Notes: generated by a model from the sequence alone, not told the origin. A DNA stretch of 64,000 nt from Octopus sinensis (GCF_006345805.1 NC_043023.1:3224001-3288000), one strand, 5' to 3'; shown: positions 33,193-45,024, counted from the first letter of the stretch. Made by a program: numbers and translations.

Positions 33193-33915
33193 ATATGCAT
33201 ATTGGTCGTGGTTTATATTATGGTTCATACATAAGTATTTATACTTGAACCGTTGGGGTGGTGTTAACTGGATTTGTAGGTTATGACCTTGAGGTCAGAT
33301 ATCATTTTGGGTGGGGGCTACGGTATTTACTAACTTAGTTTCTGTTGTTCCATATATTGGGGAGGTTTTAGTATATTGAATTTGAGGAGGATTTTCTGTT
33401 GATAATGCTACTTTGAGTCGGTTTTTTTGTTTTCATTTTTTATTTCCTTTTATTATTGTGGGGTTGGTTATTTTACATTTTTTATTTTTGCATGAAGGAG
33501 GTCCAAATAATCCTTTTGGATTAAATAGAGATTTAGATAAAATTCCTTTTCATCATTATCATAGATACGAGGCGCGTTCGATAAGTAATGCCCCTGACCC
33601 ACTTCCCATAGCAGTAGAGCAACGAAACTTGGAACAGTTATTAGTCTTTTTCTACATAGGAACAACCCAGAGTTACGCATTTTTCCCATCGTTTGATGCA
33701 GCTCCGTTTGTCCGTTTTTACAGGTTAGAGGGTGTATAGGGTTATGTTATAATTTTTTAGGACAGTTTTGTTTTTGGTTTTTAATTGGTGTATTTTTTAT
33801 TTTAACATGGATTGGGAGTTGTCCGGTAGAATATCCATATTTTTAGGGTTTTATATTTTACTTGTTTTTTAATTCAACCTATTTTAGACATATAATGAAT
33901 ATATATATTAGATTA
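33193..33915 (+). pseudogene. cob: NUMT: mitochondrial cytochrome b fragments (33193-33559 and 33739-~33915)
   Basis: In invertebrate mitochondrial code: [60 protein letters not shown], then [27 protein letters not shown]. Carries deletions and frameshifts. Confidence 0.95.
33566..33738 (+). mobile_element. Truncated mariner 5' end inside the cob NUMT
   Basis: Starts TA-CGAGGCGCGTTCGATAAGT, a mariner-type TIR. About 300 bp of cob is missing at its right edge. Confidence 0.6.
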
Positions 33916-33917
33916 TT

Positions 33918-33982
33918 AGGTTACATTGGATAAATATAGGTTTTGAAAATCTTTTGGAAATGTTTGATTCACTTGTAACCTT
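33918..33982 (+). tRNA. trnS2: NUMT pseudo-tRNA-Ser(UGA)
   Basis: Acceptor AGGTTAC/GTAACCT, anticodon arm AGGT-TTTGAAA-ATCT, directly after cob. Confidence 0.85.
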
Positions 33983-33993
33983 TAAAAGGATAA

Positions 33994-34057
33994 GTTATAA
34001 AAATAAGATATTTAATTTTGGTTTACAAGACCAATGTTTTGTATAAACTATTATAAC
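33994..34057 (-). tRNA. trnT: NUMT pseudo-tRNA-Thr(UGU)
   Basis: Acceptor GTTATAA/TTATAAC, anticodon arm TTGGT-CTTGTAA-ACCAA. Lies on the opposite strand, as in octopod and ancestral molluscan mtDNA. Confidence 0.9.
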
Positions 34058-34112
34058 GTGTATGATTATGAATAATTGTTTATTGATAGGAATATATATA
34101 TATATATATATC

Positions 34113-41947: not shown

Positions 41948-41986
41948 ATGGGTAAATTAAAGTTAGAAATTTTTTTTAGTATTATG

Positions 41987-42715
41987 TTAACCCCTTACCC
42001 AACAATTATTTTGAAAATAAATGTATTTTTTCAGACATATTTTTTAATTGTTTTATTTTACTATGTTTTGAATGGTGATTTCGAGGTATATTTCAAACCT
42101 TATTTATTATGAATTTTAATTCAATAATATTGATTTTAAATTACCGCTTTGGGCAGAAACGAGTTAACCCGTTTTTTTCATAAATCATATTACTTTTACA
42201 AAAAATCATGTTATTTTATTTGGTTATCTTATTTTCCAAATTGAGAATGAATGATCAAAACATGATTGTTTACTTCTGTTGATTTTATTACTTCAAAACT
42301 CTTCTGACGAACTTTCACTCTCATCAGATGTATCCAACCCTCCAAGAGAAGCTTCATAATCGCTATCATCATCAGAGCTCGACATGGTGGGGTTATAATA
42401 TAAAGGTATAAAAAAAACAACGTAAAAACAAAGTGAACACTTCTATTCATAAAATATGCCTTCCAACCCTTCGACTGTCTCCAGGTGACTAAATCGTACT
42501 CGGTCTTCAATGCCTTACTCAAGCGAAAGGTGGCAGAAATCGTCACTGCCAGACGTATAAAGTGAGCGAATATACTCGTATATGTCAAAAAAGAGTTTAT
42601 AATAGACGAAGGAACTCGTTTGCTGTCGATTTTGGCGAGTCTATCTTTTGACGAGTTAACTCGCCAGAGATAGAAAAAAACCATTTCGGTCAAAACGCAT
42701 ATATTCGTTTCTGTC
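41987..42715 (-). mobile_element. piggyBac-like remnant inserted in the nad5 NUMT
   Basis: TTAA-CCC left end, palindromic GACGAGTTAACTCG and GCGAATATACTCG subterminal motifs, and a minus-strand acidic start MSSSDDDSDYEASLGGLDTSDESESSSEEF*. Confidence 0.5.
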
Positions 42716-43393
42716 AGTTTCTTTTATATTTATAATTACATTTATATATTTAATTTTAAATAATTATTGTTATATTATTTCATGGGAAATTTTTAATGTA
42801 ATTGGGTTATTTGTTGAATTAGATGTTTGTTTAATTGAGTTGTAGTTTTATTCCTAGGTTTGTTAGTTTAATTTTAGGATGAGATGGATTAGGTTTAGTA
42901 TCGTTTTGTTTAGTAATTTATTATCAAAATAATAAATCACTAAGTGCAGGTATATTAACAGTATTAATAAATCGGATCGGAGATTGTTTTATTTTGGCTG
43001 GAATTAGGATTATGTCATTATTGGGACATTGAAATTATTTATGTATTTGATATTTTTGATTTATTGATATTTGTATAATTTTTGTGGTTATTGCTGGAAT
43101 AACTAAGAGGGCTCAGATTCCTTTTAGAAGTTGATTACCTGCTGCTATAGCAGCACCAACTCCAGTTTCAGCTTTAGTACATTCATCTACTTTAGTTACA
43201 GCGGGGGTATATTTATTAATTCGGTTTTATAATTATTTAGTTGAAGTAAATTATTTTTGTAACTTTATAGTGTTTATTTCAATTATAACTACTTTTATAT
43301 CGGGGGTTTGTGCTATTTATGAATACGATATAAAAAAAATTATTGCTTTATCGACTTTAAGACAATTAGGGGTTATAATAATGTCTTTGGGGA

Positions 43394-43666
43394 TGTAGCG
43401 TGTGCGCGATTTGAATACAAAGGCACCTACCTTCTCTTCTTAGTGATGGAGACCCTCCAACGGTAACTAGTCCTTCCACACAGCCCCGACCCAAACACTA
43501 ACGATAGCAGCTGCTAGCCCTAACCCTTAGCGACGTCCTCACACATCTTGTCACCTGCACGACCCACGTTGGAAAGGCCCAATTGCCCGTTCCCTGCACA
43601 CGCCTGACGGCTGACCCCTTCCGGTCAACGCACCCAGCTGCTGACGTCATCCCACAGGGGATAAAG
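43394..43666. mobile_element. GC-rich insert in nad5, possible LTR fragment
   Basis: Starts TGTAGCG. GC-rich against the AT-rich nad5, and the nad5 frame resumes after it. Confidence 0.4.
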
Positions 43667-45024
43667 ATACCTATATTAGCTTTGTTTCATTTATATACTC
43701 ATGCTATATTTAAGGCTTTGTTGTTTTTATGAGGGGGTAATATTATTCATTGTTATTGTGGTGCTCAGGATATTTGAGATATTAAAGGAGTTAGGTATAA
43801 TTTACCTTTCGCTAGGATTATTCTTCACATTTCGAATATGGCGTTATGTGGGTTTCCATTTTTAGCTGGGTTTTATTCAAAAGATTTGATTATTAAAATT
43901 TTATTGAGTAGAGATATAAATATGTTGATTGGTATATTTGGCTTATTTGGGGTGTGTTTAACTATATTATATTCAATACGTATATCTATGTATGTAGTAT
44001 GAGGAGATGTAAAAAGAGGAGTGTATGAAAATATGGAGGATATGTGTGTGTGTGTGTGGTCCCCCTAATTTAGTATTTCAGCAAAAGATATCACTACAAT
44101 TAGTTCTAGGCTTAGAAATAAGTCCTGGGGTCAATTTGTTTGAAAAACCCCAGTCAAATTGCTGAAAGAAGTAGAAGCACATCTATGTGGGCGTAATATT
44201 ATTCATTGTTATTGTGGTGCTCAGGATATTTGAGATATTAAAGGAGTTAGGTATAATGTCCCCCACCCCACCCGCCATACACCTCTGAATTTCTTTCCTC
44301 ATATCGTCCAGAAAAATTAATATTCTTTTAAACGAAATTTGCAACAAATATGCTTCAGATGTTGTAGATTATAATTAGATTGAAATCTATTCTAAAAAAA
44401 AAAAAAAAAATTGATATGTTTGCACACACACACACACGCAGATATAACATTTTTTATCAAAACTTTAAGTTTCAATTCATGATGTGTATGTAATTAGGTA
44501 TGTGTGTGAGCCCACAAATTTTGTTAACGTATTAAATTCTGATATAATTTCACCTTCACAATCCGAATGATATTTGTAGAAAATTTCATCAAAGAAATAT
44601 CCATTTCTCCAAAAGTTATGAGGAAATAAAGCTGACTGATGTGTATTTTCCAAAACTTTTCACCCCACCCTCATAAAACATTTTCACAACAAATTCCAAA
44701 ATATCCATTAATATCCATTTGTGAGAAAGTTATGAGTAAAGAAAGGTGTGTGATTTAAGGGAGATCTGCCTGTTGTTTCTAACACATCCCATTCTTGTTT
44801 CTTCCTCACTGTAACATGTATTAATGTTTTTCAATAGTTTTATTCCCATAAAAACATTTATGCTATTAAAAACAAATTAGTTTGAAAATTTGATTTTTGG
44901 GGGGATTCTCGTTTAAGTACCCCATATAACCACTCATAACCTTTTTACTTTTGGAATTTTTTTAAAATTCAGTACATTTTCAGTAAAATTTTTTAAAATA
45001 GTTTCTTTTCTTTTTATCTTTCAG

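Follow-up and report, generated by a model that had tools for sequence, protein, structure and literature searches.

In the model of Michalovova et al., as outlined by Wang et al. (2020; PMC7600805), a nuclear copy of mitochondrial DNA (NUMT) integrates once, is split by mobile DNA into collinear fragments, and subsequently undergoes deletion and duplication associated with transposons. A second described system concerns the assemblies in which such copies are read; when the mitogenome is absent at polishing, mitochondrial reads are drawn to NUMTs, whose sequence they turn into that of the organelle (Rhie et al., 2021; PMC8081667). Our literature search found no paper on octopus NUMTs. Here we describe a locus in a 64,000-nt stretch of the Octopus sinensis genome (GCF_006345805.1, NC_043023.1:3224001-3288000; hereafter the window, whose positions are used throughout), in which ~3.3 kb of sequence derived from mitochondrial DNA (mtDNA), sampled from a 3.9-kb mitochondrial span, is spread over 33193-44257. 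The locus is a NUMT that integrated once and was later broken up by transposons, and it shows two distinct levels of divergence from the living mitogenome. Its history is probably that of one old NUMT that received ~12 later transposon insertions and had four of its tracts overwritten by assembly polishing.

Mitochondrial origin and single integration

Results of BLASTN against L005, a 13,072-bp Logan contig (SRR9105629) that served as the main reference for coordinates and divergence, showed 13 collinear pieces with identities of 84-99.8% and E-values down to 0.0 (Table 1). The pieces run on one strand, collinear with positions 2358-6302 of this octopod mitogenome, in the order cob, trnS2, trnT (opposite strand), nad4L, nad4, trnH, and nad5, with 12 foreign segments between them. 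Translation with the invertebrate mitochondrial code (code 5) turned the AT-rich pieces into recognizable mitochondrial proteins, with Pfam matches to Cytochrome_B (7e-24), Oxidored_q2/ND4L (3.5e-12), and Proton_antipo_M (8.5e-33 for the ND4 pieces and 1.2e-57 for the ND5 pieces), as well as a weak match to Cytochrom_B_C (7e-4). TGA codons stand in frame at reference Trp positions, e.g., in the GWDGLG motif of ND5. ARAGORN called trnS(tga) at 33918-33982 (+), trnT(tgt) at 33993-34057 (-), and trnH(gtg) at 41479-41544 (+), for which its mitochondrial mode was required, as the bacterial mode returned zero tRNAs; trnT was also called independently by Rfam. L005, Pfam, ARAGORN, and Rfam thus bear out the mtDNA content, extent, and gene order given in an initial annotation of the window, and the 12 foreign segments agree with its count of about 12 interrupting inserts.

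The left limit of the NUMT (33193) corresponds to L005 2358, i.e., nucleotide 287 of cob, and the right limit lies at 44257; elsewhere in the window, neither BLASTN nor code-5 TBLASTX detected further mtDNA. The surroundings are nuclear, since the interspersed repeats on either side of the NUMT and within it are found again in other parts of the window. Its coding capacity is gone, through frameshifts, deletions of 12-17 bp, losses of 230, 276, and ~107 bp, and the truncation of cob and nad5.

Read across successive inserts, the L005 coordinates of neighboring pieces are 2751/2982, 3399/3397, 3529/3539, 3739/3740, 4182/4183, 4388/4667, 4771/4769, 5062/5059, 5103/5106, and 5922/5918 (here and below, a slash marks a junction). 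Of the 11 internal junctions, eight therefore show an offset of only 0-9 bp in mitochondrial coordinates, and the remaining three, which carry deletions, are still collinear. This continuity, together with the collinearity of the rest, indicates one insertion that was later broken up. That the inserts postdate a single integration, as had been proposed in the initial annotation, is further upheld by the target-site duplications (TSDs) CTAT and GGGGA and by a clean A/T site at the Helitron. Mitochondrial origin, collinearity, and junction structure, like the bimodal divergence described below, were observed directly.

Three internal mitochondrial losses (230 bp, 276 bp, and ~107-134 bp) accompany this structure. 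The 230-bp loss of cob lies at ins1 and was shown by alignment with L002 and with a second reference, L001 (see below). At the 276-bp loss of nad4, the short interspersed nuclear element (SINE) ins6b joins the mitochondrial sequence by its tail at L005 ~4390 and by its head at 4667, so that the loss looks as though it was mediated by the insertion of this SINE. The nad5 deletion of 107-134 bp, after piece J1, is without an insert and lies at a short direct repeat. At the right end, the 74-bp duplicate at 44184-44257 has four old diagnostic alleles in common with its parent at 43728-43801. It is not a TSD of the adjoining SINE remnant, because its coordinates mismatch the left flank; it stems either from a two-fragment integration or from a later rearrangement. 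The left boundary abuts a SINE tail, and the NUMT may therefore once have reached further into cob. The three losses, the duplicate, the bimodal divergence, and a 100-N gap (see below) had escaped the initial annotation. A second assembly of the locus was sought by exact look-up of a junction-spanning open reading frame (ORF) and by an exact search for the junction pattern in metagenome contigs, with no match to either.

The reference L005 holds intact nad1, nad6, cob, nad4L, nad4, nad5, atp6, cox2, cox1, and cox3, with the order cob, trnS2, trnT (opposite strand), nad4L, nad4, trnH, nad5, trnF, and contigs of four further sequencing runs were 100% identical to it. L001 is an 8646-bp contig from the European Nucleotide Archive (ERZ25068665) that runs from cob to nad2. 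L001 was reached from a cluster in a protein search with the ND5 pieces, and L005 via a member (P0124) of the cluster of L001. In that search, Argonauta hians was the sole named octopod (76% identity), the cluster that led to L001 stood at 87%, and no named Octopodidae ND5 was among the matches, although Argonauta, Euprymna, and Sepia were present. L001 and L005 differ uniformly by 3.2-3.4%. Considering that this identity of 96.6% matches the published 96.79% between the mitogenomes of O. vulgaris and O. sinensis, which split 2.5 million years (My) ago (bioRxiv 10.1101/2023.05.16.540928), the pair plausibly represents these two species. L001 itself has frameshifts in cob, nad4, nad5, and cox1, a contig name that implies ~2x coverage, and no interruptions from cob to nad2; it is either a low-coverage mitogenome of a sister species or a large, transposon-free NUMT. 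That L001 is a copy of the NUMT described here was ruled out, as the cob segment lost from the window is intact in L001, and its uniform difference from L005 also contradicts this.

Bimodal divergence and its probable origin

Divergence of the pieces from L005 is bimodal, being 7.7% in old stretches and ~0.3% in new ones. The nine old stretches have 159 differences in 2053 sites (7.7%), in addition to ~12 indel events, which are private. By codon position, 105 of the differences are at third, 29 at first, and 12 at second positions (72% third), an excess which points to a functional mitogenome as the place where most of them accumulated. Since A>G changes are frequent, RNA editing and hypermutation were considered for the old pieces, but both were ruled out, because A>G (56) and G>A (40) changes are nearly symmetric and third positions predominate; we read the differences as the ordinary evolution of a functional mitogenome. 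By branch, 94 of them separate the NUMT from L001 and L005 together, and 34 and 31 fall on the terminal branches, a distribution which implies that the old haplotype predates the split of L001 and L005. With the 2.5-My split as calibration, the age of the NUMT is estimated at ~7-10 My, which we quote as 6-12 My for uncertainty in the calibration. The capture would thus have taken place ~6-12 My ago, before the L001 and L005 lineages separated.

The four new tracts (35138-35284, 39815-40018, 41256-41545, and 42846-43391) have 0 interior differences from L005 in ~1190 bp and 0 indels where ~7 would be expected, and at each of the 47 sites that separate L005 from L001 their allele is that of L005. 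Their raw count is five differences in 1203 sites, as against 7.7% in the old stretches (Fisher p = 1e-26). Two of these five are junction bases (from the CTAG of the Helitron and from an (ATG)n tail), and for the other three, which are non-L005 alleles (35285, 41255, and 43392), a heterology junction is only 2-3 bases away. Site 43392 falls in the left TSD copy of ins10, an insert with the signature of a solo long terminal repeat (LTR), and is G, like its twin at 43660, where the mitogenome has A. Since both GGGGA copies carry this same non-mitochondrial allele, the LTR must have inserted while the tract to its left was still of the old type, and the overwriting of that tract came later. Six of the seven ends of new tracts are at a transposon junction or a deletion breakpoint; the seventh (35137/35142) is internal to a piece. 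Preservation of an ancestral mitochondrial haplotype, which had been claimed for the whole locus, therefore holds for the old ~63% of aligned sites but fails for the four tracts (~1.2 kb, 37%), which are identical to the living mitogenome.

In the history that we favor, one mtDNA fragment of at least 3.9 kb, reaching from mid-cob to ~nucleotide 1242 of nad5, would have been captured in an octopodid nuclear chromosome, where, without function, it would have decayed as a pseudogene by frameshifts and deletions. About 12 mobile-element insertions would have followed in this repeat-dense region. Four retroelement tails (one CR1-like and three of an (ATG)n family) may have been inserted by target-primed reverse transcription, along with three full SINEs, a SINE remnant, a rolling-circle Helitron (at an A/T site), two unclassified segments, and one LTR element of which only a solo LTR would later have remained; with one or more of the SINEs, 276 bp of target would have been lost. 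At polishing, abundant mitochondrial reads would have mapped to the NUMT and replaced the consensus in four tracts (~1.2 kb). Such a polishing artifact appears to be the most likely source of the overwriting, because the conversion leaves no gaps as far as the alignment break, old alleles persist only in the few bases that aligners soft-clip, and private indels are absent. Noisy long reads underlie both candidate host assemblies; that of O. vulgaris was polished with short and Oxford Nanopore reads, with the mitogenome assembled separately, and the O. sinensis mitogenome paper describes PacBio Sequel reads of reduced accuracy.

Several observations weigh against this history. Overwriting spared pieces A (375 bp), B (401 bp), E (433 bp), and K (385 bp, with no indels) yet reached F (206 bp) and H (294 bp), which are shorter, and the switch from old to new at 35137/35142 lies within piece D and not at a junction. 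As predictors of the overwritten pieces, neither piece length nor long-read chaining groups fit; possibly, NUMTs elsewhere out-competed this locus for mitochondrial reads, which could explain the selectivity and the internal switch. On the octopus repeat clock, in which a Jukes-Cantor (JC) distance of 0.09 equals 25 My (PMC13282606), the SINE divergence of 3.4-4.8% translates into 9-13 My, slightly above the age of the NUMT on the mitochondrial clock, a mismatch that likely comes from heterogeneous SINE source genes. Lastly, the contig of the NUMT starts at 32391, directly after the 100-N gap (32291-32390) and only 800 bp before the NUMT itself, so that the left flank is joined by scaffolding only.

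Alternatively, the new tracts could be real, the NUMT having been patched repeatedly by homologous repair or gene conversion from present-day mtDNA fragments newly arrived in the nucleus or from a much younger NUMT paralog, with transposons delimiting the tracts as heterology barriers. Their size (150-550 bp) is normal for conversion tracts, they are bounded by heterologies, one of their ends is internal to a piece, and a simple read-mapping artifact does not easily account for the patchy choice of tracts. However, conversion needs at least four independent events within 3.3 kb, as a single mtDNA-templated event would erase the intervening transposons, and since all four tracts show 0 differences from one living haplotype, all of these events would have to be extremely recent. 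Divergence of ~8% normally suppresses homeologous recombination. In addition, six tract ends reach within 2-4 bases of heterology, which is the signature of soft-clipping and not of a random end, and over-polishing of NUMTs is an artifact already documented (PMC8081667). We therefore regard conversion as unlikely, though it is the strongest of the rivals. Far less probable is that the site has no NUMT at all and that the assembler wrongly placed mitochondrial reads among nuclear repeats, creating a chimera. The 100-N gap upstream, the extreme repeat richness of the locus, and the identity of part of its sequence to the organelle genome would agree with a chimera, but 63% of the sequence is a haplotype 7.7% from the living mitogenome with private frameshifts and deletions, which cannot come from present-day mitochondrial reads; furthermore, the junctions bear proper hallmarks (TSDs, the A/T Helitron site, and microsatellite tails), and there are zero Ns within 32391-64000. 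Least credible of all is a cluster of independent mtDNA insertions of different ages lying side by side, which would account for the two levels of divergence (7.7% versus ~0.3%), a difference between pieces that the initial annotation had named as a potential objection, but which base-pair continuity excludes, as old and new pieces abut in mitochondrial coordinates across single transposons (3739/3740, 4182/4183, 4771/4769, and 5922/5918), the TSD of the LTR straddles an old/new boundary with the old allele on both sides, and every piece is collinear and on a single strand.

If polishing is the true cause, other NUMTs of the same assembly are probably affected. If conversion were true, sequence would flow from organelle to nucleus by a novel route, with mtDNA as the template for converting NUMTs and an old pseudogene repeatedly 'refreshed'. 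A tree built from the concatenated pieces of the excised NUMT, as proposed in the initial annotation, would represent a chimeric, misleadingly young haplotype.

Inserted elements and the surrounding window

All inserts are younger than the NUMT, so that ~6-12 My is an upper age bound for each. By self-BLAST, nine of the 12 have further copies within the window, where no second copy was found of the 139-bp ins1, the 723-bp ins9, or the 263-bp LTR ins10. SINE, Helitron, LTR, CR1, RTE, mariner, and piggyBac classes have all been reported in O. vulgaris (PMC13282606), which makes the labels given to the inserts at least plausible.

Table 1. Mitochondrial pieces, inserts, and flanking elements of the locus, in order along the window. 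Old and new refer to the two divergence classes.
Feature	Position	Strand	Description
Inverted SINE fragment, 78 bp	32794-32871	inverted	Beside the left-flank SINE
Flanking SINE, 5'-truncated	32868-33192	+	3' tail (GTAAAAGAG repeats) abuts left end of NUMT
Piece A, cob	33193-33567	+	L005 2358-2751; old, 6.5% substitutions, 25 indel columns
ins1, 139 bp	33568-33706		Replaces 230 bp of cob; starts TA/CGAGGCGCGTTCGATAAGTAATG; mariner label not confirmed
Piece B, cob 3' end, trnS2, trnT (-), nad4L start	33707-34107	+	L005 2982-3399; old; 17-bp deletion
ins2, LINE 3' end	34108-34560	+	116-codon open C-terminal ORF, (ATT)n tail; plausibly CR1-like
Piece C, nad4L	34561-34693	+	L005 3397-3529; old, 8.3%
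ins3, retroelement tail	34694-35087	+	3 x 63-bp repeats, ~200-bp tail, (ATG)n; 9 bp of target lost
Piece D, nad4L end, nad4 start	35088-35288	+	L005 3539-3739; 35088-35137 old, 35138-35284 new
ins4, tail of ins3 family	35289-35867	+	6.8 x 62-bp repeats, (ATG)n; exact insertion at L005 3739/3740
Piece E, nad4	35868-36300	+	L005 3740-4182; old, 8.8%; 3 indels including a 12-bp deletion
ins5, tail of ins3 family	36301-39812	+	67-bp x 50.3-copy array (96% matches), tail, (ATG)n
Piece F, nad4	39813-40018	+	L005 4183-4388; new, 0 interior differences
ins6a, non-autonomous Helitron, ~380 bp	40019-40398	-	5' A/TC; 3' GC hairpin, then CTAG/T
ins6b, full-length SINE	40399-40792	-	Accompanies 276-bp nad4 loss (L005 4391-4666)
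Piece G, nad4	40793-40897	+	L005 4667-4771; old, 6.7%
ins7, SINE with internal deletion	40898-41251	+	Head-to-head with ins6b
Piece H, nad4 3' end, trnH	41252-41545	+	L005 4769-5062; new; sole difference 41255, 3 bases off junction
ins8, full-length SINE	41546-41945	-	TSD CTAT (41542-41545, 41946-41949)
Piece I, nad5 start	41946-41990	+	L005 5059-5103; old, 5/45 sites differ
ins9, unclassified, 723 bp	41991-42713		TTAA/CCC at left end only
Piece J1, nad5	42714-42845	+	L005 5106-5240; old, 8.2%
Piece J2, nad5	42846-43393	+	L005 5375-5922; new; sole difference 43392, within TSD of LTR
ins10, solo LTR, 263 bp	43394-43656		TG...CA; TSD GGGGA (43389-43393, 43657-43661)
Piece K, nad5	43657-44041	+	L005 5918-6302; old, 7.8%, 0 indels
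ins11, diverged 5'-truncated SINE-like remnant	44042-44183	+	72-77% matches to SINE copies
74-bp terminal duplicate	44184-44257	+	L005 5989-6062; copies 43728-43801; right end of NUMT

Three labels of the initial annotation were supported by the structure of the elements. The insert ins6a begins with TC and ends in CTAG, which fits the CTRR pattern and follows a GC-rich hairpin; it lies between host A and T without a TSD, and its A/TC...CTAG/T termini are shared with sequences at 27115-27515, 53176-53309, 59256-59493, and 63130-63262, as seen when the termini of four copies were aligned; these sequence features confirm it as a non-autonomous Helitron. A Helitron copy at 62705-63262 contains an internal tandem array of 4.7 copies of 102 bp. 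The SINE copies belong to a family of ~392 bp with >20 copies in the window, a tRNA-like head (GGCGCAGGAGTGG...), and a tail of (GTAAAAGAG)n, and the three inside the NUMT are 3.4-4.8% from the local consensus, as are most other copies. Around the 105-bp nad4 piece, the SINE pair at 40399-41251 forms a long inverted repeat that yields spurious sub-threshold matches to the plant miRNA models MIR7723 and MIR530. The former LTR-like piece, ins10, has TG...CA ends and a 5-bp TSD, a signature that confirms it as a solo LTR; no matching LTR element was found within the window.

The mariner, RTE, and piggyBac labels fared less well. In ins1, a TA precedes a plausible terminal sequence, of which the 139 bp, single-copy in the window, represent one end only. 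The inserts ins3, ins4, and ins5 are one family, with repeats of 62-67 bp, a common tail, and (ATG)n, but contain no ORF by which the RTE label could be confirmed. The array of ~50 copies of a 67-bp unit in ins5 occupies 36300-39656, as against 3-7 units of 62-63 bp in its sister copies; either it expanded here recently or its length is an effect of assembly. Elsewhere, a 96-bp x 10 array at 54054-55014 derives from a segment of this tail family. As for the piggyBac-like label, ins9 lacks the hallmarks, with TTAA on the left only; no second TTAA, no pair of terminal inverted repeats (in an inverted-repeat search), and no meaningful Pfam domain in its ORF were found.

The 3' end of a long interspersed nuclear element (LINE), ins2, has a copy at 11194-11610 (-) that is 97.4% identical and continues into a 148-aa ORF; Tandem Repeats Finder reported (ATT)16.7. 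The second CR1-like tail copy as a whole spans 11194-11716 (-), with the 148-aa C-terminal ORF open. Such identity of a second copy with an open ORF suggests that the family was recently active. Pfam gave no match for the ORF of ins2, having no model for the region, and a reverse-transcriptase domain is absent from both copies, which comprise C-terminal ORFs of 116-148 aa only. Its C-terminal motif pattern is one that we take to be that of CR1-like ORF2, and on this sequence evidence a CR1-like LINE tail is plausible.

The initial annotation had also presented the locus as a dated record of transposon activity, at roughly one insertion per 270 bp. The arithmetic is right, but the record is weaker as a calibrated measure, because three inserts bring deletions, three class labels are unconfirmed, and SINE density is only ~2x that of the window (3 per 3.9 kb of NUMT target versus ~25 per 64 kb). 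By local standards, insertion was thus frequent but not clearly exceptional. Outside the locus, the window contains a 107-bp satellite (54 copies, 96% matches) at 2184-7961 and long microsatellites at 1-2023, 13503-15271, and 22621-23471.

Comparison with described systems

At the level of single inserts, ins2 resembles the 3' ends of CR1/L2-type LINEs in its open C-terminal ORF2 segment with a stop, short 3' untranslated region, (ATT)n, and 5' truncation; in contrast, neither of its copies has a reverse-transcriptase domain, and its assignment to this clade is putative. The Helitron ins6a is like non-autonomous Helitrons in its termini and A/T site, and it spans only ~380 bp, without a Rep/helicase ORF.

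The kind of locus is already known, both from transposon-fragmented NUMTs (PMC7600805) and from over-polished NUMTs, and the present one is new only as a cephalopod example; it is a well-preserved case of a known process in a group without described NUMTs. Compared with the Michalovova et al. model in the outline given by Wang et al. (2020), it shows the same single integration, collinear fragments, deletions (230 and 276 bp), and duplication (74 bp), whereas the host is a cephalopod, 12 inserts in a 3.9-kb target are unusually dense, and at least five transposon classes took part. Compared with the over-polished NUMTs of Rhie et al. (2021; Extended Data Fig. 11c, PMC8081667), it is alike in having tracts identical to the organelle without private changes, and here, too, noisy-long-read assemblies are involved, the O. 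vulgaris mitogenome being separate from the polished assembly. In contrast, conversion at this locus is patchy, amounting to four tracts and 37%, and the transposons apparently acted as the alignment breaks, as judged from the assembled sequence rather than from reads.

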